A DNA stretch of 64,000 nucleotides from Cyanophora paradoxa CCMP329 (taxonomy: Eukaryota > Plantae > Glaucophyta). The position numbers and the translations under genes were made by a program. Within the stretch, counting starts at the first letter, position 1; every line of letters begins with the position of its first letter. Where the stretch lies: NCBI GenBank assembly GCA_004431415.1, contig QPMI01000010.1:62001-126000 (forward strand), in the 5' to 3' direction. Positions 5,129-56,273 of the stretch are shown in pieces. Below the pieces are notes generated by a model that did not search any database, was not told the DNA's origin, and worked only from the letters and a program-made list of their open reading frames with translations.

Positions 5129-5701
5129 GCCGGCCGGGCGGTACAGCGTACCTCCGGCTATCACCCATCATTGCTCAATTATTGTAGACGTATAGTATGC
5201 TTCTTGAGTGCGCGCCAGGAGGGCCGACCAGCCCCGGCCGGGAAACATGCAGTGAGGGAACGGTCACCCCGTTTCTTCCCTCCTGCCCCGTGCCGGAAAA
5301 AGATCTGGTCGCTTTTCCCTCCTGGCCGCGCAGCGGCACACCGGGGCGATGAGATACTCGCCCCGGGGGCTCGCCTATGCTGAGCCTGATCACGAGGCGT
5401 CGTCCTCTCTTTTCTCCCCCGCGCCATTCCCGTGGATCGTGCACGTGCGCGCACGCGCGCCGTGACGTCGATCCCGTGAGTGAAAGCGATAGGCGCAAAT
5501 GTTATTGTGTCAACCAATGAGGCCGCACGAGTGAGCGCCCGGCGGCGCTGGCGCATGCCAGCGCTCGGCAATGACAAGCCGGAGTTTGCCAAGTAATATT
5601 AGCGCTCGCTCGCGGCGGCCGACGCGGCCGTGGATAGATATACGGCAGTGCCCTAAGGGAGGCGGCGCGCGAGCCCGGCAGCTGGCGCGCAGAAGGAGAG
5701 A
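5129..5701 (+). repeat. Split direct repeat B1
   Basis: Appears identical to 6291-6863 (offset 1162); the ORF track gives identical translations for both copies. Confidence 0.95.
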
Positions 5702-6290: not shown

Positions 6291-6863
6291 GCCGGCCGGG
6301 CGGTACAGCGTACCTCCGGCTATCACCCATCATTGCTCAATTATTGTAGACGTATAGTATGCTTCTTGAGTGCGCGCCAGGAGGGCCGACCAGCCCCGGC
6401 CGGGAAACATGCAGTGAGGGAACGGTCACCCCGTTTCTTCCCTCCTGCCCCGTGCCGGAAAAAGATCTGGTCGCTTTTCCCTCCTGGCCGCGCAGCGGCA
6501 CACCGGGGCGATGAGATACTCGCCCCGGGGGCTCGCCTATGCTGAGCCTGATCACGAGGCGTCGTCCTCTCTTTTCTCCCCCGCGCCATTCCCGTGGATC
6601 GTGCACGTGCGCGCACGCGCGCCGTGACGTCGATCCCGTGAGTGAAAGCGATAGGCGCAAATGTTATTGTGTCAACCAATGAGGCCGCACGAGTGAGCGC
6701 CCGGCGGCGCTGGCGCATGCCAGCGCTCGGCAATGACAAGCCGGAGTTTGCCAAGTAATATTAGCGCTCGCTCGCGGCGGCCGACGCGGCCGTGGATAGA
6801 TATACGGCAGTGCCCTAAGGGAGGCGGCGCGCGAGCCCGGCAGCTGGCGCGCAGAAGGAGAGA
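6291..6863 (+). repeat. Split direct repeat B2 (3' terminus of retrotransposon)
   Basis: Copy of 5129-5701; similarity ends at ...agaaggagaga. Confidence 0.95.
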
Positions 6864-18450: not shown

Positions 18451-18950
18451 GAATTCGCATACCCGGCAAGTCATGCCGCGGCATTGCCGCCGCTTGCCGC
18501 GCATAGGCGCTCTTGTTAGCGTCGCTGACGGCGTCGCAGACCCAGGAGGGTGGGTTCGGCCCGCCGGCTGGTGTTTCTGGCAGCTCACTCGCCCCGCCGC
18601 CCTCGCAGCGCGCGCGGAGCCGGAGATGCGCGACCAAGCGACCGGCCGCTCGTAGACGTAAGTGGCGGGCCCGCGGCGCGCGTGGCGGCAGTCAAGAACC
18701 CCGAGGACGATGCCGAGGCCCACGCGGCTTTCGCGGAGGGCGAGCGGCTCTTCTACGCCGAGCGGCTCGAGGAGGCGCTCGCGTTCTTCGCGCGCGTGCC
18801 ACACGGACACAGGCGCTACGTTGGTGCGCAGTGCTCTCCGCATCGTGCAGCACTTCCGGTCCGCGCCGAGCCCACGCCTGACGCCCGCCGCCGTGCCCGC
18901 AGACGCACTCTGGTACCAGGCGTGCACGTACGTGGGATTCCGGCGGGACG
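18451..18950 (+). pseudogene. Truncated, degenerate duplicate of the 5' part of the TPR-GT41 gene
   Basis: High similarity to 56372-56995 (EAHAAFAEGERLFYAERLEEALAFFARVPHGHRR; ADALWYQACTYVGFRRD); internal deletion and no downstream exons. Confidence 0.8.
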
Positions 18951-33078: not shown

Positions 33079-36000
33079 ATGGAGGAGTTCGAGACGTACC
33101 TCTCCCGCACGCAGAACATCAAGGACGTGCTGCAGAACTACCCGCCGGGACCACAGATTCTCCGTGCGCATCCGCCGTCGACGTCCGCGCAGTTTCGAAA
33201 ATCGTCGAGCCGACCACATTCCGACGCACATTCCGTCGCGCCGTCCGCGCGCAGGAGAGGTCCTGCAAAACGCAGCTGACGCCGGCGCCTCGTAATCGAT
33301 TTGCCTCATCTCGAGTCTGATTCTCACTAACTCCCGACCCGCCGTCAGCATCGCGTCGTTTGTGGTGGACCTGCGCTCGAATCATCCGACGGAGGGCCTC
33401 GTCGACACGGGTGGCGGTCGGCTTGGCGCGCGCCGCGTCACCGCACTGCAGCGCGCGCCAGCCCTGCTGGCCTACAACGACCGGCCGTTCACCAAAGAAG
33501 ACTTTGAGAGCCTGAGAAGCCTGGGTGCGAGCAAGAAGGCGCAGAATGCGTCGAAAATCGGACAGTGGGGCTACGGGTTCACAAGGTGCGGTTCTAATAT
33601 GCATTCCTTGAGATCTGATCATGATATTGTTTTTTCGATTGTACATGTCATGTCGCGTCAACTGACCTGCAATGCAGCATTTACCATCTGACGGACCTTC
33701 CCGGTATCTGTCTCCGACTTATTTTCTAGCTTGCAATTGCGCCCGGCCTCGCGCGCGCCGTGCACGTGTACGTGCCCGGCCCGCTCATAGGAATTCGCAA
33801 TCGCAGGCCTCGTCTCTTCGGGTCATTTCGTCCTCTTCGACCCGCACGCGCCGAGCGGCGGCATCCGCTTCCCGCTCGGGGTGCGCGCACCCCCGATCCC
33901 CTGCGTTATTCTGCAGGCCCCATCGCGCTCTTAATTTATATATTCTGCAGGCGCTCGACCCTGATGCGGAAAAGCCGATCACGTTTGCGGCGGAGTACGC
34001 GGGTCAGCTCGCTCCGTACGCGGTGCAGCTCGAGGGGGGGACGGGGTGCACCCCGGCTGCAGCGGCGGAGTTTGGTGGGACGCTCTTCCGCTTCCCCCTC
34101 CGTGGCGGGGGCGGGGGGCCAGCGCTGGCGGGGGCGCGCGTAAGGAGCTGTTTCGCATGTCGCAGACGGCCCCGGACGGACCTCGACGGGCCGAAAACGG
34201 CGCGACCTTTTGGACATCCCGCTAGTTCGCGAGCTTTAACAATGGATGGAATTTGAATTTTGAACACGGCCGTGTCACGGCGGCTATCAGCCGGCTGAGT
34301 TCGAGTTCGAGCTGGCTAGACCAAATTCTATATCCCCCCCAAGCCATCTCCCCCCCCTTCCAAGCCACGGCCAGCTGCAGCTAGATTGCGGCCAGCCACG
34401 GACTTGCGCGGGAAAAGCAAAAGCGCTTATAGCTTAGCGTTCGGCGATCGAGATGCCGCTCTCTGTGCTGTCTGCCAAGGTCGGCTCAGCGTTCGGTTCC
34501 ATTAGAGCGTGGCTGGGCGGCGCCAGCGATGGCAGGCCGCGGCACGGCCAGATTGGCGGCAGCACCTGCGGCAGCCAGGACGACCTCGGCGAGGACGTGA
34601 ATCCAGACGACTGTGGCGACGCAGCTTTGAGCGAGCAAGTCGTTCAGCCTGCGCATGCAGCGCCAGCTGCGCATGCGACGGCCGCGGTCGCGCTGGCGCC
34701 TCCCGCGGCGGAGCCGGCGGGCGGGAGCGACTCCCCACAAGTCTCGCCAGTACGCTCAGAGCTCGAGCAGAGCCCCGGCAGCGGCTGCTGTGAGACGCCA
34801 GGGACGCCTTTGGGGGGGGGTACGCCTGTACAGCCGTGTACGCCGCCTGTCGCAGCTGCCTCATCAGCGACCCCCGTGTACACGCCTGATCGCCCGCGTC
34901 GCAAGCGGGTAGTAGCTGCGCCCTCGCAATCGCAGCCTTCGCATGATCAGCCGGCCACGCCTCCACGCACGCAGCCGCCGGCGGCAGCGGCCTCGCCAGC
35001 GACCCCCGTGGACATGCCTAAGCGCGTGAGTCGCAAGCGGGCAGCGGCGGCGACCTCCCAGCCTTCGCCCGCGGCGGCACCGAGCGAGCAATATGAGGAT
35101 CCCTTCGTTGCCATGGAGCGGTATATGGACGATCCCTCTGTCGCGCCGTCGCCTGCCAGCTCAGCCGCGAAGAAGCCAGCCCCGAAGAAGCCCGCCACGT
35201 CCACCAAGCAGCAGTGCAAGCGGCGCAAGTGCGATGTCGAGATGACGGGCGAGGAGGAAGATCGATTCACCCCCTGGGACAAGCCCGGGCGGCACCGCTT
35301 TCGCATCGAGGAGGAGGACGCCGCACTCTATCGGAGGCTCACCGGCTGCAAGCGGGTTTCCGATGCGGTTCGCATGGCGTCCAAGCTCCTTGAAGCGATC
35401 GAGTACCTTCAGCAGCGTGTGCGCGCGCCGTTTCACGCCGCCGTGCGCTTCGCCCGCAGCTTGCCTCGCTGATTCGGGCCGCAGGATGTCCTAGACAAGG
35501 GTCTAACTGGCGCGGAGCTCGCCAATCAACTGAAGGCGAAAGTCGACGTGTTCCTCCGTGCACCGGCGCAGCGTGAGGAGCTCCAACAGAAGTGCAGCTC
35601 CCTGGAGCGGGAGCTCCCTGATCTGCGGTGGGCCAACAGGGAGAAGCAGCGGCAGATCGCTCAACGGGAGGAGAAGATCGCTCAGCTGGAGAAGGAGATG
35701 ATGCAGCTCAACGCCAGTCTGGTGAGCCCGCCGGCCGCCGCGCCGCCCGCGCCGCCGGCGCCCGCAATGCGCTGCTGACGGCGGTCCCTCCGGCGCCCGC
35801 AGAGAGCGACTCGGGTCAAAAACCTCGAAGAGGAGTGCGAGGAGCTGCAGAACCAGAACGCTGCGCTGCAGACGAAGGTGGATGACCTGGAAAACAAGGT
35901 CCGCGATTGCCCACACGCGTGCGTGCGCCCGCTGGCGCGTAACGCGGCGCGGCGCAGGTCTCAAGGATGAAGAGGAATTGGGACTTGGAGTTGGAGCGTG

Positions 36001-39000
36001 AGGCGAAGGTGTGGCGGAAGGAGGAGCGCATGTACATAAAGGAGGTGGAGGAGCTGGAGGCCGTTATCGAGTATCTCTACATGAGGGACGTGCTCATGCG
36101 GGAACCCCGGGGGCCTAGGGTCGCAGGGTGGGTCGCCGCGGTCCAGCAGCTACACGCTGCTGTGCCGCCGGAGACGTCGCCTTTCGAGGCGCCCGCCATC
36201 GGGCGTCGGACTGCAACCGGATGCACTCGACGCTTGCGCACCTCGCGTTCTGGGCGCGCGTCGACAACACGAACGCGCCCGGCCGTTGGAGCTGCGAGGT
36301 CATCGAGTCCTACATGGGCCTCCTTCGGCGCCTGCGACACACCGTCACGTCTCTCGGTGGCGGGTGGAACAAGGACCTCGACATGCTCAAGCAGATCATG
36401 ACGCACCAGCGGCGGCGCCTGGCGCTGTGGATGCGGAACATGACGGAGGCGAGCGCCGGCGGGAAGGACGCTGCCCACGCCGAGTACGACGCGCCCGTCG
36501 CCGCCAAGGCCTGGCCAGATGGGCCCTTCATCCCCCGACCTGCGGCCCGTCCCCACCGGTCAGCGGCTATGCAGGGCGAAGGGGCGGCGGCGGCGCCGCC
36601 GGGGGCGAGGAGGTGGCAGCGGTGCCCCTGCCTGCGGACGAGGAGGAGATCGACGAGGATATTGAGCTGCAGGAGGGGGATCCGGTGCCGGAGGACGAGG
36701 TGCCCGAGGAGAGCGGGGACGAGGAGGAGGAGGAGGAGGAGACCGCCGAGTACGACGCCGAGGCAGAGGAGGAGGCGGAGGAGGAGATGGAGGCGGAGGA
36801 TGAGGGCGCCAACATGCTCGATTTCGATGATAGGGCCCTAGCAGAGGTTCTAGCAGACGATCTAGCGGAGGGGGAAATAGACGAAATGGATTTGGACCAG
36901 ACATAGCGCACCTTGTAACCTAGATAGTGCGATTCTCAGTAGCAGCTTCACGACTTTGCCCTCTTGCGCGCCGCCACCGCGGCCGCGAGCTGTGCCGCGC
37001 GATCCTTCCTGCTGCAGGATTAGGCGAGCAAGTAGCCGAGCGGGGGGCGAGGGGGAGGGGGCGCACTTGGGGACCGAGGCGGATGCGGCGGGGGCAGGTA
37101 GGGCGGCAGCGGCCGGTGGGGCAGCAGCAGCAGGGGCCGACAGGGCGGCGACCGGCGGGGCGGGGGCGGGCGGGGCGGCGGCGGCGGCGGCCGGCAGGGC
37201 GGCGGCGGCGGGGCCGGCGGGGCGGCGACGGCGGGGCCGGCAGGGCGGCGGCGGCGGGGGCCGGCAGGGCGGCGGCGGCAGGTTCTGAAGGGGCTGCTTC
37301 GGGGACAGGCGGCGCCTTGGCGACGGTGTTGGCGCCGGCGCGGCACCGGCGCGGGCGCTTCACGGGGACAGCCGCGAGGGGCCCCGCGAGGCTGGCGATG
37401 CGCTCGCCGTCGGGGCCGTACTCGTAGCTCGGAAGCTCGAGCGTGACGTGCCCACCTTTCCTGCCCGAGCGCTTCGTGGCCACGATCCGACCGGGACCTG
37501 CCGCGCCCAAGGAGCAGAGCTTCGTAAGCGAGCGGCGCGGCGAGGGCGGGCCGGGCGCACGCTCGTCGAACTGGACGACGTCATGGGAGCCCGTGTGGCG
37601 CGGCACGATTAAGCCGCCGTACGCCTTCTCGACGGTGACGGTCTGCATCTCGCTGTGCTTCCGGATCGCCTTCCCGTCCGCGTCCCGCTTGCAGACGCGC
37701 TTGGACGCTTGCGCCACGCCGGAGGGACCGAGAACAGCTGCAAAGAGGTCGGAAAAAGAACAGCGAGCGGGAAAAAGGAAGCGGCTTCCACCAGCAGCGG
37801 TCTCGCGGTCCGGAAGCTCGATAACGAAGCGATTCGCCGCCGGCAGCTTGTCAACCGGGATCGGCTGGCCCGTCTTCGGGTCGATGGGCGTGGCGACGTG
37901 CGCGACCTGCGCCACGATGTTCTCCTGCGATGCGCACCGTTAGAGGATAGGAAAAAGAACTTCGAACGAGTCATAAGAGCCGCAGACCAACATTGCCGGC
38001 CCGGCCACCGGGATCTTGACGTTGACAAGCTGCGTCCCGGTCTTCCGGCGCTTGAGGGCGTTCGCGGCGGCGTCCTGAAGGTAGCCAATCGCCTCCACGC
38101 GCTCCTCCGGCCTCGACAGCGGCCGGAGGAAGCACGCCATCTTCTTCTTCGCCACTCGCTTGAGCCTCGCGTTGAAGGCGAGGGCGACGTCGAACTGGAA
38201 GGAGCCGTCGCCCGGGAACGTCATGATTTGCTTACAGACGTAGATGTGGGGATCGGCGTGGTTGAGGGCTTTGTACTCGTCCGCGGCCACCACCTTCGCG
38301 GGTGCGTGAACCTGCGCGCACGGGCATCGGACGCTGGAACGGGGCGCGGGCGCGGCGGGCGGACCGTCACGTTCGAGTAGTAGATGAGGTGGTTTGCGAT
38401 GGCCACGGCTGCCTGCTCCCCGTCTGCCTTGATGATCACGCTGCCGAGCCCGCAGTCCTTCACATCGGAGTCCTCCGGGCGCACGAAGCGCCGAAGGATG
38501 ACGCCGTTGACGGAGTAGTTGAAGTCGCCGCGCTTCGCCTTCGTCTGTGTTGGGAACTCGCCCTCGACTCGCGCCAAAATCGTTTCACCTGGGCGCGGGA
38601 AATGGAAGGGCTTCGGGCGAACGACGCTGAGTTCTGGACACAGCTGGGTGTCTGAGCTAACTGAACAGATGACGAAGTCGCCAAGGCGAACGTGGTAGGC
38701 GCGGCCGCTGGTGTCCAGGCAGCGGACCGTTGCCGCGGGGTGCTCGCCCTTGAGGATGTCGAGGTCAGGGAGCTTGGGCTCCTTCGCCTTGCGCGCCTGC
38801 TGAGTGATCTTGTTGACACGCTTCATGTTGCCCTTGCCGGCCCACGAGCTGCTGCTGTCGGGTCGCTTGCCGTGCCAGCGGTGCCGACGTCGGGCCTCGT
38901 CGAAGCCGTCATCCCAGAGGCTGGGTTCCTTTCGCTTTGACTGCTTCATGCACGGCGGCGTGCAGGAATGCTCGCGCTCGGGCGTGCGCGATGGCGGGAA

Positions 39001-42000
39001 GCTAGCTAGTCCGGCCTAGCCGAGGGAAGCTGACTAGCAAGCCGGCCTGCTGACCGTTACTGTGACCGTTGTGGCCGCGTGTGTACGCCACTGTGTACGA
39101 GGCCAAGTTCGAGCTCAAGTTTGCGCTGGGCTAATTTCATTGGCGGAAGAAGTTAACAATGGGCGGGGCGTGACGCAAACTCCGTTCAGTTTGAAACGGC
39201 GGGCGGGAGCATCGGCACGCACTCGGAGATCAGCGACCGAGCTCTGACGGGGGAGTACCTTCTGCAGCTGCTGGAGGCGTTCGAGCAGGCGGCGCCCGAG
39301 CTGCTCCTTTTCCTCCCGTCCCTCGCCCGCATCGAGACGTACGTCTGGCGCGACGGCGAGGCGCGGCCCGCCCGGCGCTTCTTCTGCACGGCGGACAGCA
39401 GCGCTAGCCCCGAGGCCCGCTCGGCGTTCTGGCCGTCGCACCCGCCTAAGGAGGACTGGGTGAAGGCCGCCCGCTGCAGCTTCGGCCTGCAAATCAGCTG
39501 GCAGCACTTTCGAGGAGAGGTGCATACGGAGAACTGGAAAGTGGCGAGCCGTTTCGGCGGAGGCGACTACGCCTATTTCCAGTCACCCGAGCTTGCCGGC
39601 AGCAAGCAGCGCTTCGTACCCTACAGCGCAGTCGCAATCGGTGCGCTCTGTACATGTTCAAATACGTATGCGAACACGATTTCGACCTTTCTTAATTTTT
39701 GAGTCATCATAAACCGACTCGCGATCACCGTGCAGGGGATCGGCGGGAGAGGGGCCGCGGCCGCGTGTTCTGCTTCCTTCCGGTGGGCGACCTGCCGACG
39801 GGCGACGCGGTACACGTGCACGGCTTCTTCGCGCTGTCTACAAATCGTCGCGACATCGTCTGGGGCGGCGATCTTACCGTGCGCTCTGCTTTAGTCTGCC
39901 TGTAATTACCTTAAGCAAGCTTGATGTGTGGTCTGTGCAAGCAGGACGACGCGGCGAACAAGCGGCGCTGGAACGAGTACATGTTCGAGGACTGCGTCGG
40001 CCTCTGCCGCGCCGACCTCGTCGAGCTCCTTGCGGCCGAGGCGCGGGCTGCGGGCTCTTAGCTTGTCTCTTTATATATCTTCTCTGAATTCTCAGCATTT
40101 ATGAATTAATATTCGAATTCGTCGTTTTTTGCAGACCACGAGCTGGGCGGCCATCGCCGCGCGCAGCTTCTTCCGTGCGGTCATTGGCCTGCCCGTGCTC
40201 CCTGCCGCAGACGGGACGTGGCGGAAGGCGGCGGAGGCTCTGCAGGCCAGCGGACCCGGCGGAGTGGTGAAGGGGACGGCGCTGTGGGACTACCTGGCCG
40301 CCAGCGGCCTGCCCCTCGTCGACCTGCCGCAGCACGTGCTCGATGGCTTCTGCGCTGCGGGTGCCGCCATCCGCGTGGCGTCTGCGGACGACGTGGCGAA
40401 GCACATCTCTTCGCTGAAGTCGACGGGCACGGGCCCGAAGCCCTCGCCACAAGCTGCGGCGGAGCTCCTCGAGTATTTCGCGCAGCATGCGAAGACGCTG
40501 GTGACGAAGGAGCTGGTGGGCGCTCTGTGGCTCCCAATCGAAGGCCGCGGCGACGTTCGTCTTCTGGAGGGAAGCGGGGCGGCAGGGGGGCCTGTCTATC
40601 TGCTGCGCCGGGCGGGCGGCGCGGCGTCGCTCGATGTTAAGTTGGCCCTCCAGCTATTCCCGCAGCTTGCTCCTTCGCTGGTCGACAGCGAGCTGTCAGC
40701 TGTAGTTGTGTCGTGGCTCGATTCTAACTTCGTCAGTGCTGGCGCCGCCAACGTCCGCCACTTGTCAACCGAGTGGCTCGCCGATCTGCTGCCGATGTCT
40801 CCCATGGCGGCACTTCACGGGCAGCAGACTGCCCTGGGCAAGCAGGCGCCGCCAGCTGCGTGGTTCAATCTGTTCTGGCGTTTCGTTGCTCTGGATCTCG
40901 GCACCGACTTGCGCAAGGCTGGTACCTGGCCTCTCGTGCAGCGCTCAGACGGCAGCTTCGTTGCTTTGTCGCCCAGTCGAATCCAGTTTATCGACTCTGA
41001 CCTCTCAGCGTATTCCAGCGCGGCAGAGATTCTTTCTTCGCTCGGGGTCTCCATCGTTTCTACGGCCGCCCCGCAGGCGCACGATCTCGTCGCTCCATAC
41101 TGCTCCTCTGTGAATGCCTCCAACGTTGCGAGGGCGCTGGGGGAGGCCGCGGCGTCGTCGGCGCCCCAAGCGGGGCTCGCGGCCGCCGTCGCGCAGCTCC
41201 CACCAAAGCAGCGTCTGCTGTTGCGCGACTTGTTCGCAGCTCTACTTCGAGCCGGCGCCGTAGGAGACGGGGGCGTTGCAGTCAACCTGATCCGCCCCCT
41301 GCCTCTGCTTGCTACGTACGGTTCGAATCAGAAATTCATGGCGGCGTCGGCAGGTGCGAAGCTGGCACCGGAGGGCCTGAAGAGACTCGTCAATGGAGAG
41401 AGCTTCATTCGGGAGCAGGATCTGGCGGGCTTCCTCACCGTGCAGCGGGCGTCGTTCGGCGAGTACGTTCACGAGCATCTTCTCCCTTGCATGGCGGCCG
41501 GTGCGGCCGACGAGGTGCACAAGGCTTGCATCGAGCTTCTCGAGCACCTTCCTAATCTCCCGCCCGACATTCGCTCCACACTTTCGAATGCACCAATTAT
41601 CACTGTCAAATCAGGTGCTTTTGCTGGCCATGGGCCTCTAATATTTATATTATTCAATTATATGATTAGAGCTCTTCTCATATTTTAAATTATGCGCGTG
41701 CAGGCTCGAAGCTCGTCGCGCCAAGCCAGCTGTATGACCCTGAAGTTGCCGACCTGCGAGCATTGCTGGGCGAGAGCCACTTCCCGGCCGGCATGTACGC
41801 CGACCGAGCCGTCCTCGCCCTGCTCCGCGAGTGGCTCGACCTCCGTCGCGTCCTCTCCGCCGAGGATGCCGTGGAGATCGCCCGGAGCGTCGAGCAGGCG
41901 GCCCAGCAGGCGGCTCCGTCGGGCAAAAAGAAGAAGAAGGGCGGCATCTTCGGCCTCTTCTCGTCGGACAACAAGGCGCTGCAGGCTGCGGTCGGCAAAG

Positions 42001-45000
42001 CACGCGCGCTTCTGGCGTACCTGGTCAAGCACTCGGACGACATCCAGTGGGATCTCACGCAGCTGCGCGACATCCGATTTCTCCCGCCGAAGGAGAGGCC
42101 CTCGTCGCTCCCCGCCGGAGCGCCGTGGCGCGGGCCGCCGCAGTCGTGGGCGCTAGCTTCGCCAGCCGAGTCGCGGCCGTTCTCGCAGGCGCCCTTCTGC
42201 AGCGCAAGCAAGGTACCGGTCGACACGGGCATTGAACTGACGCCGGCGATTGTTGAGCGACTCGGCTGGGCGGCGGGGAAGGGAGAGCTGGCGTGGTCGC
42301 AGCTTGTCGCGATCCGCGAGGCACATGGTGAAGGCAAATTGCGCCCCGGCAATGTTGCGAGCCTGCTCGGCCCTGTCTACGAGGCGCTCAACGACGACGT
42401 GCGAGGAACGAGCTCGAAGCTCACAGAGGAGGCGTTCATCTGGTCGGGCTCCGACTTCCTCCCTGCGTCGCTCTTCGCCATCGCCGGCCTCCACAACCTG
42501 GACGCGACCCCCTTTCTCCTTCTACTCCCGCCGTCCATTGCAACGCACTCCAACCTCGTTTCGGCGGCGGGCGTTCGCGCGTCGTGGAGCATGTCCGATT
42601 ACGTCGGCGTGCTGGCCGCGGCGCACAGCCAGTCGCAGGGCACCGCCTTCTCCACGGACGAGATCCAGCTCTTTGCGTCGATCCTGTCCATGGTGCAGGC
42701 GCACGGAGGCGCAGAAGCGTTTGCCGGCACCGCTCTGTTTGTGCCTGGAGTGGACAGCCGCCTGCACCCTCCCTCGGCGTGCCTTTTCAACGACAGCCCG
42801 TCCAACTCGGTCATGTGGAACCAGCTTCAGGCCGCGGGCACGGGCGACTACGTGATGCTGCACGAGCTGCTGCCGCGGCCGGTGGCCGCCCTCTGCGGCG
42901 TGCGGATGCTCTCCGAGTACGTCTTCAGCGCGTCGATCGTGGAGGAGGAGCCGTTTGAGATCCGCGAGCCGCCCGCTGCCCGCATCACCGGCATCGTCGG
43001 CGCATACGGGTGCGGCTGGTTTATTTTAAATTTGTGTATTCTTTAGACTTCGCTCATGCTCATTATCTCGTCGCAGCCACGAGACTGTGCCCATTCGAGA
43101 GTTGTTGCAGAATGCAGGCATGAAATTTCTTGAGCTGCACATGCACTCGTGACTGATCGCGATCATGGCAATATTAATGCGCATCAGATGACGCCGGGGC
43201 GACGACGATGTCGATCTGCTATGATCAGGCTACGTTTAATGAGGACGCGGAGACCTTGCTCGGGCCAAACATGCGCTTCCAACAGGGCGAGGTGCGCATA
43301 CACCGCGGCCTTACGCTGCGTTTGATATATCGATTGCATTACCCTTTCTTGACTGATTTCGAAACTTCACCGTCCCTTCGCTATCACAGGCACTCTGTGC
43401 GTACAACGACTCGACGTTCAGAGACAGGGACTTTACTGGCATCGTGCGCCTCGGCATGGGCAGCAAGCAGGGCGACGAGGGAAAGATCGGGCGCTTCGGC
43501 GAGGGCTTCTCGAGCGGTGCGCGCATATGCATTCACTCTAGATCTGCAGCTTCGCCATTCACTCGTATGCATTTAATTATCGGGCTGACACACGATGGAC
43601 TGCAGTGTATGCGTACACCGACACGCCGATTCTCGTGAGTGGAGGCTACGCTGTTGTCATGGACCCGACCGAGAAGCACCTGCCGAAGGATGTCAGCGGC
43701 CGCCCGCGTACAGCAGCCCGTTTCTCTCTGCTTCGTCAGGCCGGCGCTGGTGCCCGAGCAACAATTGCTCACACGTGTCCCAACCAATTCGAGCCGTTCC
43801 GTGGTCTCTTTCGATGCGAACCAGCTTCCGGAAAGTCATACAGCGGCACTCTTTTCCGCTTCCCTCTGCGCACCAACCGCTCGGTACGCATTGGAATTTT
43901 ATTTATTTGGAACAATATTAATGCCACGAAAAATTACCTGAGCTAATTATAATGTATGCTTGTTCCCCCGCCTTTCCAGGTCGAGCACACGGGCGGTATC
44001 ATTTCGAAGGAGGTGTACAGCGAGCAGAAAATGCTGCGCATTCTCTCGGACGTGGTCAAATCGGCCCCGTCGCTGCTGCTCTTTGTTCAGAGCGTCAACG
44101 TGCTCGACATATGGCACCGGCCCGCTGCAAACAAGCCCCCGCTGCTTCTGGCTCGGGCGACCCGCAGCGGCGATGTCGACGCGGTCCGGTTGCCTGCTGA
44201 GCGTCTGCCCGGCGCCACGGTTGACCTCAGCGGCACCATCGTAATTTCCGTCGAGGTCTTCGCGGATGGGCAGCGGCTGCTCGGGATCAAGGCCGGCACA
44301 ACGCAGAGCACTTGGCGCGTGCGCTCGCGGCTGGACATGGCCGGCCACCACCGGTTCTTCGAGCGGATGAAGGTGGAGCAGGCCCAGCGCGTCAACACGG
44401 GCACTGTTCGCCAGCCCAAGTACACTCCCTGGGCAGGCGTCGCTGCATGCGTTTCACAGGTGCCTTGCATTAATTTGATGACATTCAACGCTTCAGCGTC
44501 TCAATGACAGAGTAGCAGGCTGCAGGTAACGAGCGCGTCGAAGGGGAGCTGTACTCCTTCCTCCCGACGGGCGTGAAGACCGGCCTCCCGGTGCACATCA
44601 ACGGCGTCTTCACGCTCACCTCCAGCCGCCACGGTCTAGTCTCCGGCGAGGATTTCGCGCACACTGTCGAGGGTCGCTGGAACAAGTTCGTGCTCGAGGA
44701 CATAATCGGTGAGCACTTTAATAATTTCTCAGCTCCTGCAATGCATATATATGCAGCAGCATTTAATTTTATTCTTGTCAGGCCCGCTCTACGCCGAGGT
44801 GCTCGAGGACTGCGCGGGGGCGCTCTCTCCCGCCGACCTGTACGCGTCGCTCTGGCCGCCCCGTGAGGCGGACGTCGACGCCCTCTGGCACCCCCTCGCC
44901 GACCGCTGCCTGAGCGAGGCGGTCCGCCGCCGCCGCGTCGTGCTCGCCTCGGACGGGGCGATGCACTCTGCCTCGGAGCTCGCGTTCGCGACCGGCCCCC

Positions 45001-48000
45001 AGTGCAACGAGCTCACCCTGGCATCGCTGCACGCGTGGGCGCCTTTCAACTCTCCAATGTCTTCCACCACAACGGGCGCCGCCCTGGCTCTCCCGCCCTC
45101 CGTCCCCGCTGTCATCCGCGCCCTTGCCGCCAAGCAGTCCGGTGTGCTCGTCGGCACTGTTCCTGCCAGCGTCGCGTCAAGCCTGGCGACGTGCAGCGCT
45201 GGGAGCGACGTGCGGTTCATCACGGTGGAGGTCGTGCGCAGGGCTCTGCAACAGGCGCCGGCGCCGCTTCTCTCCGCCGCAGCGGACGTGCGTGAGGTGC
45301 TTCTGCATTGCCTGGAGCCGCCAGGGTCACCAGTGCCGACCGGAAAAGATCTCGACGGCATCCTCGCCTTGCCCACTTGCGACGGCGCCATCTCTCGCCT
45401 GCGCATCGGCAATGCATCTGGTGGCGCTCGCGCACCAGCTCCGCTCTTCATCAGCCACGTACACCATCGTCAGCTGCTTCCGGGGCTCGAGCGCCGCTTT
45501 CTCGACGTCGATCCGTCCACACCTCTGGGCATGCGACTGGCAGAGGTCGCGCGAGGGCTGCAAGCCGTGCAAATAAATGTGGCCGTCCTCTCCGTTGAAG
45601 CTCTCTGCGATGCGTTCGGATCCGGAGGGCTGCTGCCGAACGAGGACGTCATCGACAAGAAGCAGCTTCTGCCACCGCTCAGTGCCGCCTGGATGCAGGC
45701 TGTGTGGGAATATTCACGCGAGTGCAACTCTACTCTATTGCTTGAGCGATGGCCGCTGCTACCGGTCCTTGGCGACAGCCTCGTGCGACTTCCTGCACTG
45801 CCAGCTTCAGCAGTCTTCGCGGGCAGCGGTCGGCTTCCGACCGACGTTTGTGCGAGTCTTCAGCGGGTGGGCGTGCTCTGCGTTGACGACGGTCCAGCGG
45901 GCATCGCCAGTTTCGCGGCTCTTACCAACTTCGTGCATCCTGGCGCGTGGCAGGGCGTCATCATGATCAGAGCGCTGCAGGGCGTTGCCGTCCGCAGTGG
46001 CACATCGATCGTGCAGCTTGCCGCGAGGGCTCCAGATGCAGACGTTGTGGCTTTCCGGGACTTCGTTGCTGCATCGGCGGGTCGTCACCTGTCGGAGGAC
46101 GACCAGCAGCTGCTCCGGCCTCTCCCACTGTTCGAGTCGTTGGAGTTCGGCACACGCATAGCGCCTGGCGATCAGGGCGTCGCCATCGCCCCGGACGCCC
46201 AGGGCTTCCCGATTAAGCTGGGCGCCGACCGCCTCTTCAAGCGATCCTCGCGCGATGTCGTGTACCTTCTGGAGGCGCTCGGCGTGCAGTCGCTCACCTT
46301 CTGCGACTACGTGCAGCGGAACGTCGTCGGCGACGTGCTCGGGCAGCTCACTGCCGTCCAGGACGCCGTGATGCTGGCCGTGCTCGACCAGCTCCCGTCG
46401 CTGTCTCAGATGGAGCGCGGCCGCGTCATCTCTTCCGTCCGCACGCTCAGCTTCGTCGCATGTGGCCACGAGGGCGGCAGGCGCGCGGCTCCAGCGGAGC
46501 TAGTCGATCCGCGCGACTCCGACGCGTGCAAGCTCCTGCCCGAAGGTGGGCCGTTTCCTTTCGGCGTTTATGCGAAGGAAGAAAGGCTTGCGGTGCTTCG
46601 CGAGATGGGCCTTCGGAGCCATCTCAGCTCCGACGAGGTCGTCAGTATCGCTCGTTCTGTCGCGGAAAGCGGACGAAGCTCCGTTGGTCGCGCTTCGCTT
46701 CTGCTCAAGTACATCCACATGCACAAGCACTCGTTGGGATTCTCCGACGAGCTTCGAAACGAGCTGGCCTCCATCTCGTGGCTGCCTTTCCTCGCGCGCC
46801 CCGCATCATTCCCCAGAGAGCTACCATGGCACGGGGCCGGCGACTCTGGATCCGACGGAGCACGGCTGGCGGCCCCGAAAGACGCGTTCCCGCGCAGCTG
46901 TGAGAAGCTCGTTTCGGCGACGCGTCCTCTCGTCGATGCAGGTCTGAACATCGTGGCGGGACCCATTGCGGAGCTCTTCGGGTGGACCGTACGCGTTGAC
47001 GTCGACGCTCTCGCTGCTGAGATCAACGCTCTCCGGCAAGCCGTGTCAAGTCAGCCTGCGGAGTGCGAGCTGTCGTCCGAGGCTGTCACTGCGCTCGAGG
47101 AGAAGACGCGGGAGATCTACGGCTGCTTGGCCAGGATGGACGGTCCCGAGCTCGAGAAACTTGCGAAAGGCTGGTTGGAAGGAGAGCAGCCGTGGTACTG
47201 GACAGGCGTCTCGTTTCTTCCCTCGTCGCGCCTCCAGACTGTGAGCACGAAGGAGCAAGAACAAGATGCGATGGCCTCATTCAGCGTGCCGCCTGTCCTT
47301 CACTGTGTGCCGCTTCACGAATCTATTCGTCTCAAGGCCCTCTTCACCGCCCTCAAAGTGCAAGAATTCGAAAAGTACAGCCGGGAGGCGGTGGTGGAGG
47401 CGCTGCGCGAGAAGCAGGCGTCGACTGGCGAGCGTCCTCTCTCCGAAGCCGAACTACGCGGCGTCTGCGCTGCTCTGCACTTCGTCTGCAAGTGCAAGCC
47501 GGAGGACAACGCCGATCTCGCCGACCTGCGCCTGCCGGCCGGCAACGGCGTGCTGCGGCCGGCGTCGGAGCTGCTCGAGGCTGACATGGACTGGCGCCAG
47601 CTCACCATCGAGCTTGAGAAGGTGTTCATGAGCGGCTAATTGCACTCGCACTTCGCTAGAACGCCTGCAAGAGCATTGATCTCGATCTTGCAGGTGGTGC
47701 ACCGAAAACAGGTGCTAATATATTTTATATTCCGCGCTCGCAGCTTCCTGCCCGTGCCGGGGGAGACGGGCCTGCCCGTCCACGTGAACGCTGCCTTCGA
47801 GCTCGCGTCGAACCGGCGGGACCTGCAGACGGGCCAGAACGCCGCCACGCAGGCCGCCGAGCTCTCGCCCCTCAACGCCCTGTACGTCAACGTGGTGCTC
47901 CCGCAGGCCTACGCGCGCTTCGTCGAGGAGGTGGTCGCCCTGAAGGATGTCCACGCCGTCCTCCAGAGCTGGCCGGGCTACCACTTCTCCACGCGGGAGA

Positions 48001-51000
48001 GGTGCGCATGCTTGCTGCCGTGGTGCTTTCTCGCTCGCCCGCGCTGATCCGGTCCGCGCCTGCAGGTACATGCCGTTGCAGCGGAAGACGCTGCAGTTGC
48101 TGTTCGACCGGCCCGTCCTGCCCCGCTACGCGGCCGGCGGCGGTAGCACCCGGGGCGAGTCCCGCGATCGCGAGTTCATCAAGGCCAGCGAAAGTCTGTT
48201 CTGGAAGCCCGCCGCGGAGCCGGCGCCGGCGCCGCCCGCCTCATCCTCGCCTTACGGATCCGGATCGGCCCTGGCTTCGTCGGCGTCGTCGTGGGCGTCC
48301 GATCGCGACGCCCGCGCGCGCGTTCTCGACGCCGTGCGCCCCGTGATGGACTGCCTGACGGCCGTGGGTGTGCTCCTCGTGGAGGACCTGCAGCACGCCG
48401 GCCGCCCGTACTCGATCGCCTCGCTCTTCGAGGACGCCAAGTGCGCCGTCAGGTGGCTCGCCGCCGAGGGCGTCCGCGCACGCCTGCGCGAGGAGCCAAT
48501 GTCGACGGCGGCCCAGCAGTACCTCCAGCGCGTCGACTTCAGGGAGCGGCTGGCCGTGCTGGCCTTCTGCCTCTCGGACCTGCGCGGCGAAGTCGCCCCG
48601 GCGCAGCGCGAGCAGCTCGTCGGATGCCCGCTCGTGTTTCTGGAGGGCGGCCGCGTGGAGAAGCTGCAGGCGCAGGCATTGGGCTCCACGGGGCATCTCG
48701 TCGTCCCCGCGAAGCAGCTACCCCTCTTCTCCGCACAGCAGCGCGCGAACTTCGTCAGCGACGCCCTGCGCACGCTCCACACAAGAGAGCTCGACCTTCT
48801 CGTCGCTTGCAACCTCAACGTTCGCTGTCTCACATTCGCCGCCCTCGTCGACCTGCTCAAGCAGCCCGGGACGCCCTTCGCCGGCCACCGGGGGCGGGAC
48901 GTGCCCATGTCGGCTTCGACCGATGTGTGGCCCGGCGCGCTCTGGGACTTCGTGTTTCCCGAGGCTTCGAATTCGAGGCGCACTGGCGCAGCGCTGACCG
49001 CTCGCTCCCTCCTTGATTCGCTGAAGGATTGGCCGGTGCGATAAATATTCGAGGTCGACGTCCACTTCATTAATTTCTCGAGGTCCACTATCGATTGCAG
49101 GTCATTCCAACCGACGACAAGCACCTCTTCCGGCCCTCCTCGCCGTCGGTCGTGCTCCGCTCCTGCGATCCTCGAGTGAAAGGCGCCCTTCTCAAGCTGG
49201 GCGTCCGCACGGCCGAGCCTACCTGGTTGGCGAGGTACGACGCCGTGGGAGCAGCATGGCAGCAGATGCAGGATCCGGAGGGACAGACCTTCCTCCCCTC
49301 GCCCGCCGCCATCAACGTCCTGCACGCCATCGGGGAGAGCTCCCGCCGCCAGGGCATGGCGGCCGCCCGACTCTGCGGCTCGGCCGGCCTCGACGCACGC
49401 GAGCGCCAAAACCTGCTCTCCGTCCTCTCCACGAGCATCGCCAGCGCTAGCGAGGAGAACGGGCGACTCGACGCGTGCCGCCTCCTGGGGGCCCTCCCCC
49501 TCTTCGGTGCACCCGCCCGGCCCCCCAAGCGCTAGCCCTTCCCCGAGGCTGAACCTGATCATGATCATGACACGCCTGTATGCGCAGAGCTGGCGTTCCA
49601 GCACGGAATCTTTGTCGCCCTCCACCACTCGCAGCTGCCCGACAGCGACGTCGTTGCGTTGGTGCAAAGCGTTGGCACTGAGGCGCTGCACACGCCGTCG
49701 CAGCGATTCGTGTCGCTGCCGCGCCACCTCGCCGACATGAAGTGCCACGAGGAGATGCAGAGTCGAAACTACCGCGCCCCGACGATTGCTGACGTGCTCG
49801 GCATCTCGCGCGTCGAGCTGGCGCCGTTCGTCGTGCAACACTTGCTGCCAAAGTTTTCACACTGGAACAGCGCGCTACGCGAGACCGTGATGCTCGCCCT
49901 GCTCGACGTCATAAGGGGCGGGGTGGCCGCGGTCGCGAAGCCGATCACCCAGCAGCTCAAGTCACAATCCTGCGTGCGGACGTCGGGTGGGCGGTGGGTC
50001 GCCCCTTCTGAAGCGCTCATCCCGCACGTTGTCCTCTTCAGTAGGGTAACCCAATCGCGAAATTAAATTAAACCCCTTCTCATAGGGCGAAATTTAGACT
50101 GCTTTATAATTATTTTGACGCCCGCCAAGGTGTACGAGGGCCAAGACATCTTCCCCGCACCCCGCTTTCTCGAGCAGGAGCGCTGGCTCGCCCTCGCCGA
50201 GCTCGGAGTGGCGCACTCCGAGCGCGCCCCCGCGTCGCTCCTCCGCTGCGCCCGCGAGGTCGCCCGCCAGTGGTCGGCCCTGGGCGCCGTGGAGGGCGAG
50301 GCGGCAAACAGGGTCGCGGCCCGCGCCAAGCTCGTGCTGGAGGCGCTCTCGGCGGCGCTCATCACGGCGGGCCCGGCGCTTGCGCACAGGGGCGAGGGCC
50401 CCGCCTCCCTTGAATTTCTGAACGAGTTCGGCTCGATCGCGTTCGTGCGGCCCGTGTTGCACGCGGACCTCGCGTCCAGCATGGGCCGCCGCGTCGCCGA
50501 CGCCGCGCCGCCCATCCGCTCCGCCGTACCCCTCTCCGCCTGCACCCTCCTCCATGTCATGCACGAGGCGCGCCCCTCGGGCCTTTAAATTCATCTCCTT
50601 CTGATTGCGTGACCGGAGCGCAGCGCTCGCCCGACCGGTGGTTCGTCTTCACGCAGCGGCCCCTCCTCGCCCTCGACGCCCTCTTCCGCCCCGAGGCGCG
50701 TTTGAAAATTTGAAAATTTAAATTTGAACGCTGACGTCGACCGCGCGCCAGGTCCTCGACGCCCTCGGCGTCTGGCGGAGCGCATCGGACTCGGCCCCGC
50801 TCGAGCCCGTGCTTCGGCACCTGCAGCGCCTCTTTGGCGCCGCCGGCGGCGCCAGCGAGGCCGGCGCGTGGCTACGAGCGGGGGGATACGCCGTCCAGGA
50901 CGTCGAGACGGTACTACGCCCGCTGTTTTTCATTCGCACGCTGTTAGCTGCACTCCTATATTGGAAACGGGGTAGGGCCCCCGTTTCCTGTCACTTACAA

Positions 51001-52782
51001 AATGACGAGTCTGCTCATCTCCCGATCCGGCTCCGATCCGGCGAGCACCCAGCTAGCTCGACCTACCCCGTTTCCAACCGGCGGCCGGCCCAGTCAGAGG
51101 CTCAGAGCCCGAGCAGAGGCCGCCGCGTGCCTGTTAATTCATGGCGCAGATCGCGGTGGAGTGCCTGCGGTACCTGCACGCCAAGTGCGGCTACGGCGCC
51201 GAGCGCGTCTCCCTCGAGCTCCTCCAGCGGCGGGACCGCGTGACGGCGGCGCTGGCCCCGCTCGCCGTCGTGCCGGCGCGGCTGCGGGGCGGCGGGCGCG
51301 GCCTCGTCCCCTGGGGCTCCCTCATCTACGACGAGGCCGAGGACGAAGACGCCGAGGACTTCATTGCCGTGCGCCCTTATTACTTATGAGCTTCGATCAT
51401 TATATTATAATGCTAGCTATTTACCACAACCTACTTTATAAGACCTCCAATCAACAATACTTTTTGTGTGAACTCTCCGAGCTCTCGCGAGCTCTCCGAG
51501 CTCTCATATAGGCGTTTCTCCATTCAATTTATCCCATCCCGGCCCCTCGAATTTAAACGTACGCGTATAAATATATTCGCGAGCTCTTTACGTTTTCGTG
51601 CGCATGCGCAGGTCCCCCGCGCGTTCCGACCCTTCAAGGAGCTCCTCCTCGCCCTCGGCGTGCCCCTGCCCGACAACCTCGGTGCGAATCAATATATTGA
51701 TATTCTTTGTCTACCAATTTCGCACCTCTTTCGAATTCGAGTTCGAGTTCGAATATGCGCTAAGTCCCGGCGCGCGCAGCCGAGCGGATCCGGATCACGG
51801 CGCCGAGCCACGAGCGGCTGCTGCGGACGGGGGCGCTCCGCAAGCTGCGGCTCGCGAACCACGGGGACCCCGAGAAGCTGCGCGACTCCCTCGCCGACGT
51901 CCACTACGAGGTCGAGAAGAAGTGCGCTATATACTTATAAAGCTACACACGTGTTTCTAATGTTAATAAATATCAATCTTACGATTCGTTATTGTCCCCC
52001 TGTGCACGTGATGTATTTATAATATCACGTACACACGTTTCTGATTATAATGTCACGTCCACTATGAGGTACACACGTTTCTAATTATAATATCAATCTT
52101 TCGATACGTAATGTTAAATTATATTAATTAATAGTCTCCTTGTGAAGTATCTCTGATCATGACGTTTTAATTTGTGGCCGGATGCAGGCCTGTGCGGGCG
52201 CACCGCTTCGTGCTCTCGGACCTCCCCTACTTCGAGATGGCGCTGCGCCCCGCCGCCGGCTGGCCGGCCGGCTCCCCGGAGGCCCCGCTCGCCGTCCCCG
52301 ACTGGACCCACCGCGCCTTCTGCGCCTTCCTCTACTACATGCACGCTCTCTTCCTCATTTAATTTCGTACCCGTTTCGTTTTAGAGTCTGATGGGATGTC
52401 AGGTACACGTGCACGCTGCCCGGGGCGCGGCGGGGACCCCCCCCGGAGGCGCCGGAGGGGGGCCTGGGCTGCTGGCCCGAGGGGGCCCTCTCCCCAGACG
52501 AGGCGGTGGAGCTGCTAGAGGCCGCCGAGCGCTGCGGCATCGCCCACCTCCGAGAGGCGAGCTCGAGCGATCTCGCGGCTCGCCGATCCAGTGCGCCCCG
52601 CCGCTGACTCGGCGGGTTGCCGGCCTCAGAGCGTGGAGAAGTACGTCGTGGACCTGCGGATGGTGACCCCCGCGACGGTCGGGGCCCTGCGGGAGGCCGC
52701 GGAGGCGTACAGTGCGGACCAGCTGCGGGCTCAATGCGAGCGCGCCGCGCAGGAGTTCGCTCGGCAGCCCACCGCCTCGTGA
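33079..52782 (+). CDS. Giant multi-exon sacsin-like protein (GHKL/HSP90-like sacsin repeat regions) with C-terminal BTB/POZ domain
   Basis: Repeat 1: EVLQNAADAGAS, YNDRPFTKEDF, KIGQWGYGF, GTLFRFPLR, LPTGDAVHVHGFFALSTNRR; repeat 2: ELLQNADDAGA, KIGRFGEGFS, GTLFRFPLR, TGLPVHINGVF; partial repeat 3: TGLPVHVNAAFELASNRR; BTB ADVHYEV..VRAHRFVLSDLPYF..AFLYYMYT..VELLEAAERCGI. Confidence 0.88.
34453..36906 (+). CDS. Nested gene 1: Pro/Ala-rich N-terminus, basic patch, long coiled coil, acidic Glu/Asp tail (two apparent frameshifts)
   Basis: ORFs 34453-35472, 35548-35778, 35967-36401, 36128-36841, 36286-36906 linked by GT-AG introns or frameshifts; heptad-rich LEEECEELQNQNAALQTKVDDLENK. Confidence 0.7.
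36920..38949 (-). CDS. Nested gene 2: BAH-domain-like protein with basic N-terminus and Ala/Pro tail
   Basis: YHVRLGDFV..ILARVE..RRFVRPEDS..HLIYYSN|VHAPAKVVAADEY..HIYVCK follows the BAH motif order. Confidence 0.7.
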
Positions 52783-54079: not shown

Positions 54080-56273
54080 TCACGCCCTCCACGGCGCCGA
54101 CGGGGACGGGGACGGGCGCCCCCCGAAGATGGCCCGGAAGGATTCGCCCACCTTCCCCTCCCAGTGGTACCGGCGGCCCAAGTCGACATGCAGGGCGACC
54201 TCGGGGCGGAGGCCGGCGAGGACCTGACGAAGGCGGATCCCGGACGCTTGAGCGCGACGGCCAGCGGCCGCGGGCGCCACGGGCGGGGCGGGCACCTCGT
54301 AGGGGCGGAGATAGGTTGGGTCGACGTCGATGTCGCGGGGGGAGATGCGGCAGTCCAAGTGGAGAGACTCGAGGGAGGGGAGGGCCAGGATCGACTCCGC
54401 CACGGCCCCGTTGAGCAGTCGGTCATATCGAATTCGCAGGGTAAGATCCACGAGGGCGCGCCGCACGCCGTCGCTCGAGAGGAGCGCGGCGGTGAGCTCG
54501 GGCGGCGGCAAGCCTGCGGGACGGAAGATAGTGAGCGATCCGCATTGTTATGCACGCGTACGCGGACGTTCGCGGTCGCTTCGCTTACTGTTGAACTCGA
54601 TGCCGAGCCTGGACAGGCGGGGTAGGCCGGAGATCGCCTCGGCCAGGGCGCGCAGAAAGGCGGAGTCTTTCGCGTCGTCGCCACTCCGTTCGATATGAAA
54701 CAGCGCGTCGCGCAGGCCCGCGATGCGGCCGAGGGCCACGACGGCTGCGGGCGAGTGCTTGTCCGCATCGAGCTGTGAGGGGATCCGATCAGTAGAGCTC
54801 GCCCACTGATCCCCCCAAAAGGCGAGAAAGGCAGCTGCAGTGGAGAGGCACGGCTAGTGCTAGGGCTCGAGCTCTCCAATCTCGTCCGGCATTGCGTTTC
54901 TCCCGCGCAAGCATGCACCCGCGGCCGCGCGCGCGCGCACCCGCAGCGGTCTGATGGACTCTAGCTTCGGCATACGGCTGAGGGCAAGGAGGCCGTCGTC
55001 GGGACTTGTCCAGACGTGCCTAAGGGAAATTAAAAACCTGGACAATGTAAGGCAGGCATGCATGCATACGCACTCGTACCGATCCTCCTCGGTGACGAAT
55101 GCGATGGAGCGAAGGCTCTTGCCGGCGGCGCCGTCGGCCAGGGCCGCCAGTCCGCCGGTGATAAGCTGAAACACGGCCGAGGTGGAAATCAAGACGATCT
55201 GCTGGAGATGCGCCAGGGGCGCGAGGGCCGTCAGGACTCCGGTTGCTGATTCACTCTTCGAACGAAGTCGGATAGACTGCAGGAGGGGACAGGCATCCGC
55301 GATGGCTGCTGTTCTCTGCTGATCGAAGCCTTTGTCGGGAGAACCAGATGTAAGAGAGAGGGACCGCAGCTTGCTGAAAGGGGCAAGGGCGGCCCGCAGC
55401 TCGGCGGCGGCCGGCCACTGGAGGAAGGTGGCAGGGGCCGCCTTTCGACCCGTCGCCGAACTGCAGCTGAAGCTGACGCTGATGCTCTCCAGATCTAGAG
55501 CGCTCGCCGCCCCCTCCGGCGGCCGCAGCGCCCGCAGCGCTTCAAGCAGGTAGTTCGACAAGAAGCCGCGGCCAACTTGCTCCCAGAGCTCGAGGTATCT
55601 GTAGGGCGATGAAGTCCGACCGCTAAAGTATTCACCGATGGACGGGCGCCGAATTTCCGTGGGTGCATCGTACGCGTTGGAGAGGTGCAGCAGCTCGATG
55701 GACACCTCCCGCGGCTGGGCCGAGCCGCTGTGGCTGCGGACGATGGCACGGAGAAGGCCGCACGCCGCCTCTACTCTGCGCCGGTGGAGATGCTCCGCAT
55801 CGCTTTCGTAGTCCAGTCCTAAGAGCCGCGAGAGCTCGGGCCTGAGCGACACGCTCGCGCCCGCGCTGAGCCGCAGCTTTCTCGTCTCGAAGAGCGCCGA
55901 TATGGCTCGGTACACGTTCTCGTCACCCTCCTTGCTCGCCTCTTCCGAAGATTGGCCGGCGCCGCGGGTCACTTCAAGATATCGATCGACTTCGACATCG
56001 ACGTCCGCGGCCCTGATCCGCAGCTCGAAGCTCGCCCACTCCGTCTCCTCCACCACCCGCCGCCACCGCCTCCGCTTCGACGTTAGCTACGAAGCGCGCG
56101 CGGCGCAGTGCAGGAGACGCGAACCTGGACACGCGGCGCAGGCGCCAGCCCTCTTGCGGCCCGAGCGCCTTGAACACGTCGCCCAGAACAGCGTCCGGCA
56201 GCACATCGAACGCTCCCGCAGCTGCTGGCGGCTCTTCGACGCGGGCCCGCTTCTCCGGGCGCCCGCCTGACAT
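54080..56273 (-). CDS. F-box/LRR-like protein
   Basis: MSGGRPEKRAR..AFDVLPDAVLGDVFKALGPQEGWRLRRVS|RWRRVVEETEWASFELR; LRR-like LRSLSL, CPLLQSIRL, LPRLSRLGI, LPSLESLHL. Confidence 0.85.

Follow-up and report, generated by a model that had tools for sequence, protein, structure and literature searches.

A multi-copy insert in a sacsin-like gene of Cyanophora paradoxa is probably a deletion derivative of a RAG1/Transib-like transposon

In the 64,000-nucleotide stretch of Cyanophora paradoxa DNA analyzed here (the window), an exon of a sacsin-like gene is interrupted by an insert that has the hallmarks of a young cut-and-paste transposon. We consider it probable (roughly 0.7) that this arrangement represents an ordinary gene-disrupting insertion of a Ds-like deletion derivative, whose potential to behave like an Introner is only a candidate property. 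The parental element is a RAG1/Transib-like DNA transposon of C. paradoxa, of which the insert is an internally deleted copy. An earlier, sequence-only reading of the same DNA had proposed a recent mobile element that landed in a sacsin exon, and this view is borne out by the multi-copy nature of the inserted DNA and by the host gene, which matches the Pfam family SACS both upstream (E 1.5e-13) and downstream (E 5e-4) of the insert and is otherwise intact and open on either side. The coordinates of all features are listed in Table 1.

The extent of the insert was determined with contigs (not raw reads) from one DNA run and three RNA runs, aligned to positions 33700-39690 at 88% likeness, with tables of joints and loose ends that include many GC-rich look-alikes. 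The latter three runs represent RNA, because the GT-AG introns of the genes within the insert are removed in them. The DNA contigs covering the two flanks have depths of 66 and 73, those covering the insert depths of 1141-1945, a ratio of 16-28 that is not to be equated with copy number. On the left-hand side, the first base of the high-depth DNA contig is 34139, and the match to RNA contigs of other copies breaks off at 34139 and 34138; on the right-hand side, the last base of the high-depth DNA contig is 39197, and the match to RNA contigs of all three runs extends to 39198, followed by foreign flanking sequence. The element thus spans positions 34139-39198, plus or minus one base, and the preceding segment 34104-34138 is not part of it, because it sits on a single-copy flank contig, with the multi-copy contig beginning only at 34139. 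Unique flank contigs span both junctions with zero differences, which rules out the misassembly that the earlier reading had named as a caveat. No empty allele that splits the flank contigs was detected in the one DNA run.

The proteins encoded by the insert match EukProt models of C. paradoxa, with ten models of a transposase and eight of a coiled-coil protein (gene A) on different contigs. Since contig depth and gene models agree, the inserted DNA is multi-copy. Its copies are near-identical: outside GC tracts, the contigs differ by 2 substitutions over 5 kb. Junctions of other copies were found neither within the 64-kb window nor in metagenome or viral contigs.

The relationship of the insert to RAG1 rests on a remnant of its transposase gene. 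Positions 36221-36903 correspond to residues 756-944, the C-terminal fifth, of an annotated 944-residue C. paradoxa transposase (EukProt model tig00000137_g8141, P0012). Its segment 36221-36553 is 100% identical to residues 756-866, followed by the acidic tail, which in other copies is brought into frame by one additional G after 36600. P0012 contains the motifs LAGDGT, VTGDYKF, CPHC, DDALHG, HSTLAH and SCEVIES, arranged as in the RAG1 core, the first four of which we take to be the counterparts of RAG1 motifs. It thereby displays RAG1-like core features: motif order places the candidate aspartates within LAGDGT and VTGDYKF, C535/C538 and H757/H762 stand for the zinc ligands of the CxxC and HxxxxH type, and E784 for the glutamate. 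HSTLAH and SCEVIES align to residues 932-973 of mouse RAG1, with E784 falling on the catalytic E962, in a sequence alignment that is weak on its own (E 0.08). Language-model features point in the same direction, with RAG1 clusters at 0.94 and 183 of 256 features shared. When a structure model of the transposase was compared with 48,161 chains, RAG1 took the top three places (Z 9.4, root-mean-square deviation 4.1, 147 residues aligned), and Foldseek also ranked RAG first, without reaching significance (E 0.02). Neither a sequence search of the Protein Data Bank (PDB) with the whole transposase core nor an Atlas shape search returned a match. Similarly, no relatives outside C. paradoxa were obtained by word search or by a full HMMER search with the 126-residue remnant as the query; one match, P0010, was discarded as a repeat artefact. 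Between positions 36205 and 36221, at least 1424 + 1264 letters (2688) present in other copies are missing from the insert. As this deletion removed both catalytic aspartates, the copy is non-autonomous.

The termini of the element read CGT...ACG and share the degenerate pattern CGT-N6-CTG, with symmetry at 7 of the first 12 bases and at 9 of 20. They are flanked by GCG, the sole perfect duplication longer than 1 bp at this site; a 5-bp reading, GCGCG/GCGGG, contains one mismatch. The simplest account of the junctions is an insertion at an in-frame GCG codon together with a 2-base slip in the GC run, the alternative being a duplication of 5 bp in which one base is mismatched. The frameshift that a plain 3-bp duplication entails might also be explained by an old short intron at the empty site, but this idea was rejected upon inspection, as no donor-acceptor pair of plausible length retains both FPLR and SEIS. 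A Helitron2/Helentron or Replitron (HUH) origin was likewise dismissed, since the folding of the ends does not exceed that of shuffled sequences, a duplication is present, and the transposase is a RAG1-like DDE enzyme.

These results revise much of the anatomy previously proposed for the insert. Its boundaries had been set at 34104 and 39195, positions that disagree with the contig branch points, and the GGCGGG microhomology noted there does not mark the junctions. The proposed terminal hairpin folds no better than shuffled sequence (z +0.3 to +0.6). The element had been described as devoid of terminal inverted repeats and of a transposase, contrary to the shared CGT-N6-CTG ends (7/12) with their perfect GCG duplication and to the RAG1-like remnant, and as carrying two genes, whereas this copy contains parts of three: gene A, the transposase gene and a third gene, gene B. 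Finally, splicing had been calculated to add only 14 amino acids, a figure that counted the peptide GGGGGPALAGA as part of the element; moreover, the threonine of FPLR-T is encoded by the last bases of the element.

The most consequential claim of the sequence-only reading was that the element brings along the splice sites needed to remove it in frame. The underlying positions are all reproduced: the conserved GTLFRFPLR motif ends at 34103, the putative donor GTAAGG starts at 34140, the CAG acceptor ends at 39189, both sites are in phase 0, and their junction yields an open frame leading into SIGTHSEIS. However, on the best end model the in-frame outcome does not extend to the family. GT occupies the second base of the element and CAG lies 9 nt from its end on both strands, and thus in both orientations. 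Because the two motifs sit at both ends, they are probably by-products of the CGT and CTG blocks of the degenerate terminal repeat. Combined with a 3-bp duplication, the element's own donor/acceptor pair would leave 1 + 9 + 3 = 13 nt and thus cause a frameshift. At the present locus, the splice is in frame because the junction has 2 bases beyond what an in-frame empty allele predicts. A donor formed from a duplication starting with GT or GC (X+CGT) would leave 9 nt and preserve the frame, a situation open to 12-18% of exonic 3-mers. That one of the two donor routes is in frame is expected by chance in 2/3 of cases and is thus no evidence of selection.

The alternative that fares best, while still unlikely, is that splicing at this locus removes the same transposon so frequently that it functions as a new 5-kb intron, with the CAG at 39189 as acceptor and either the GC at 34134 or the GT at 34140 as donor, and that the two extra junction bases were perhaps kept to put the GT route in frame. 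Both donors fall in phase 0 and keep the frame when joined to the acceptor, and the GC donor GCGCGC shares five of its six bases with GTGCGC, the most frequent donor locally, in a host gene whose model uses GC donors. Moreover, known Introners take their donor from the duplication or add codons (10.1101/2022.06.06.494994). The otherwise undamaged state of the host gene would also agree with splicing, but it is equally expected after a very recent insertion. GTAAGG scores low compared with local donors (1.1 vs 6.9 in a hand-built matrix of 27 donors), and the resulting intron would have 14 times the length of even the longest proven one, the ten RNA-proven introns measuring 53-372 nt and host introns 46-250 nt overall. 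Nine YAG acceptors are found less than 300 nt from the donor, read-through meets a stop at 34254, and a transcribed sense-strand gene resides inside the insert. Taken together, this context argues against efficient splicing-out. The RNA data agree weakly with this notion: among the joints listed in the three runs (contigs, host depth 1-3), none connects 34133 or 34139 to 39190, and no RNA contig of these runs covers 39500-39690, which mostly comprises the distal downstream exon, with upstream host bins at a depth of 1-3 in two runs. RNA contigs of other copies cross the left end and its donor unspliced (depth 3 and 102).

It is tempting to speculate about a broader version of this idea, in which the degenerate terminal repeat of a RAG1-like transposon doubles as splice signals in both orientations, with CGT completing a GT or GC donor from the 3-bp duplication and CAG lying 9 nt from the end, such that some exonic insertions, including this one, are removed in frame as multi-kb introns with transcribed genes in a genome whose introns otherwise measure ~50-250 nt. 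We regard this scenario as quite unlikely. If splicing did occur, the element would represent a protein-coding, multi-kb Introner that belongs to the RAG lineage, and the birth of an intron in a genome of short introns could be tested on it directly. The locus contributes the corrected ends of the element and the frame arithmetic for the intron idea.

Even less probable is an Introner-like family designed for in-frame removal, either through 5-bp Transib-type duplications (1 + 9 + 5 = 15 nt, in frame in both orientations, with one mismatch here) or through the targeting of sites starting with GT or GC, where 9 nt remain. GCGCG and GCGGG differ by a single base, the 5-bp reading gives an in-frame empty site, and canonical Transib and RAG transposases produce 5-bp duplications (PMC1131882); in addition, X+CGT resembles the local donor consensus. 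However, a mismatch is improbable in a duplication as young as the near-identity of the copies implies, the chance expectation for one in-frame donor applies here as well, and the remnant left by splicing in the plus orientation contains a TGA in one phase. Very improbable, lastly, is a transposase-free cargo element at 34104-39195, an old intron that harbors nested genes, or an assembly error, since the tidy outcome of removing that segment, FPLRT with the 11-residue spacing of sacsin repeat 2, is opposed by shared sequence that starts only at 34139 and runs to 39197/8, by the transposase remnant and by short-read contigs that cross both junctions without differences.

Several points also weigh against our preferred interpretation, a gene-disrupting insertion of a RAG1-like deletion derivative. 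The high-depth DNA contig stops one base before the proposed end of the element, at 39197. If the duplication is the 3-bp one at 34136-38, the empty site deduced from it is frameshifted although the host gene is otherwise intact, so that a further event at the junction has to be postulated. The RNA test for splicing is weak, as contigs drop rare forms, the host depth is only 1-3, and only listed joints were seen. Moreover, the structure model of the transposase is of low confidence (predicted local distance difference test score, pLDDT, 37), and a Pfam search of the transposase gave no match.

Full copies of the element carry the coiled-coil gene, the RAG1/Transib-like DDE transposase gene and a partner gene in convergent orientation, and spliced RNA of this partner also extends antisense across the transposase. 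According to the mechanism that we favor, the transposase may have recognized the element by its degenerate CGT-N6-CTG ends and placed it in an exon of a sacsin-like gene that was intact until then. Its middle part could have been lost before the jump, in which case the copy would have been mobilized in trans, or afterwards by interrupted gap repair that left filler DNA. The insertion most likely knocks out the host gene, because read-through meets a stop at 34254 and because, in a genome of short introns, many closer acceptors compete. The in-frame splice option would then be a locus-specific accident of the 2-base junction change, and excision may proceed through hairpins formed on the flanks.

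A comparison with known systems underscores both the affinity and the peculiarity of the element. The Transib superfamily was described by Kapitonov and Jurka in 2005, with a canonical Transib/RAG duplication of 5 bp (PMC1131882); 3-bp duplications have been reported for Hayabusa and Transib-6 as exceptions within Transib, and Nozomi/Hopper-related Transib elements and their internally deleted derivatives have also been documented (bioRxiv 10.64898/2026.08.26.747230). Like these elements, the C. paradoxa transposon combines RAG1-like DDE motifs in the expected order with a long, internally deleted, non-autonomous copy and a 3-bp duplication as in Hayabusa and Transib-6. It differs in its ends, which share the pattern CGT-N6-CTG with 7/12 symmetry rather than forming CAC-starting repeats of the heptamer-spacer-nonamer type known from recombination signal sequences, in a perfect duplication of 3 bp instead of 5 bp (at one site), in at least two extra genes, in its glaucophyte host and in the lack of close relatives found outside C. 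paradoxa. It works like a Transib/RAG1-type transposon but fails to show the canonical terminal repeats and duplication length. ProtoRAG and AanRAGL (PMC9435367) similarly carry a RAG1-like transposase gene and a second gene, in convergent orientation in ProtoRAG, and include an algal case, Aureococcus; in contrast to these elements, the C. paradoxa transposon has a partner gene without a RAG2-like match, no bipartite CAC repeats, a 3-bp rather than 5-bp duplication and an extra upstream coiled-coil gene.

With Introners (10.1101/2022.06.06.494994; PMC12130899), the insert shares its nature as a transposon in an exon, a possible acceptor near one end and a possible donor that is carried along or taken from the duplication. 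By definition, Introners have many copies present as spliced introns, mostly short and non-autonomous, and the Introner elements of Aureococcus add 12 nt (10.1101/2022.06.06.494994; PMC12130899), whereas splicing of the present insert is a mere possibility, the default outcome of the own-donor route is a frameshift, and the insert spans 5 kb with transcribed genes. The element is a recent multi-copy transposon whose typical copies would keep the frame only with a donor taken from the duplication, and on present evidence it does not fall under the definition of an Introner. A further parallel is found in maize, where Ds and dSpm insertions are spliced from exons by means of fortuitous splice signals at their ends. 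These are likewise deletion derivatives of cut-and-paste elements, and dSpm also shows C...G ends and 3-bp duplications, although they belong to other transposase superfamilies and splicing has been seen there. A paper on the Ds intron is among the references of PMC3443670. No literature joining Cyanophora, RAG1 and transposons was found. If our interpretation is correct, the element belongs to a RAG1-like transposon family that is apparently undescribed and resides in a glaucophyte; it has unusual ends, a 3-bp duplication and extra genes and bears on the question of how far the RAG1 fold tolerates differing ends and staggers.

Table 1. Features of the insert and its host gene (positions of the window)
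Feature	Position	Strand	Remarks
Transposon copy, 5060 bp, internally deleted, non-autonomous	34139..39198	+	contig branch points, sequence of ends
Left end CGT-N6-CTG	34139..34150	+	GT at position 2 (candidate donor GTAAGG, 34140)
Right end CGT-N6-CTG	39187..39198	-	plus strand: CTG block reads CAG (39187-39189), candidate acceptor, 9 nt from end
Left target-duplication copy GCG	34136..34138	+	alternative: GCG at 34134-34136 plus 2 extra bases (34137-34138)
Right target-duplication copy GCG	39199..39201	+	
Candidate GC donor GCGCGC	34134..34139	+	target bases plus first base of element; phase 0, in frame with acceptor
C-terminal remnant of RAG1-like transposase	36221..36906	+	residues 756-944: H757, H762, E784, acidic tail
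Internal deletion junction, filler-like 15 nt	36206..36220	.	unmatched to either arm; no 8-mer of it elsewhere in copy
Gene A	34453..36205	+	disordered N-terminus and coiled coil, ~430-450 residues; three introns spliced in RNA; 3' end cut by deletion
Gene B and spliced transcript	36241..38949	-	starts at 38949; seven introns seen in RNA; 3' part antisense over transposase tail
Host sacsin-like gene, 5' part	33079..34138	+	six exons, open frame of 216 residues, introns 57-103 nt
Host sacsin-like gene, 3' part	39199..52400	+	buildable open exon chain, introns 46-243 nt; far end approximate
GC-rich single-copy stretch GGGGGPALAGA	34104..34138	+	on unique flank contig (depth 66)

The remaining genes of the element provide further information on its other copies. 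Four contigs carry gene A and the transposase gene at a distance of 2-3 gene identifiers, and full copies may contain one more gene between the two. In longer copies on the EukProt contigs tig00021244, tig00000829, tig00021137 and tig00000249, one or two gene models are located at this position; a further EukProt model, P0013, fuses the start of gene A to the transposase. The depth of the DNA contigs varies along the element, reaching 25-28 times that of the flanks at the ends and in gene B and 16-18 times at gene A and the transposase tail, and this unevenness suggests the existence of further deletion derivatives.

A similarity of gene B to BAH proteins was not confirmed, as there was no profile match and its single-sequence structure model was unusable (pLDDT 31). 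Searched in pieces, gene B gave no Pfam, Atlas or credible PDB match, and no RAG2-like partner was seen. Spliced RNA extends from gene B on the minus strand across 36241-37066, antisense over the transposase tail, and includes a 372-nt intron spanning the acidic tail. It is possible that this RNA acts as a built-in antisense silencer of the transposase. RNA contigs from the three runs contain gene B splices followed by 787-1840 letters of foreign flanking sequence beyond 39198 in other copies, and in at least one of these copies transcription of gene B seems to start beyond the end of the element.

The window also contains an abundance of short motifs that look like hairpin-excision scars. Across positions 4753-61985, mostly in intergenic DNA, the patterns X-C-rc(X)-G-X and X-rc(X)-X, in which X comprises 3 bases and rc denotes the reverse complement, occur 60 and 436 times, compared with ~4 and 34 times in shuffled sequences (13-14x), and the excess is by far strongest for an X of 3 bases. 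The density of the 9-nt class of motifs is 12.5 per kb in host introns, 3.2 in exons and 1.6 in the element. The X-C-rc(X)-G-X class implies an element whose ends are C...G and whose duplications measure 3 bp, a description that the RAG1-like family of Cyanophora fits and that CACTA elements would fit as well. The match between the ends and duplication of this family and the abundant C/G-containing 3-bp scars makes it a candidate for hairpin-excision assays.

Within the host gene, the third sacsin repeat apparently begins at the LPVPGETGLPVHVN motif (47620-47750), without a preceding ATPase-like part; the host model requires a 3-nt micro-exon in this region, and its structure is uncertain there. 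Elsewhere in the window, positions 735-3524 contain a 929-residue open reading frame in which Pfam detects a reverse transcriptase domain (RVT_1, E 8e-9), and an identical direct repeat of at least 300 nt occurs at 5129-5428 and 6291-6590, 1162 nt apart. At 12081-13191, an inverted repeat of ~100 bp with 98% identity, a 793-nt spacer and internal tandem units resembles a miniature inverted-repeat transposable element or a foldback-like element. In addition, there are paralogous gene segments with 72-92% identity, situated ~38-41 kb apart at 13200-14460 and 54700-55950 and at 18706-18851 and 56755-56900.

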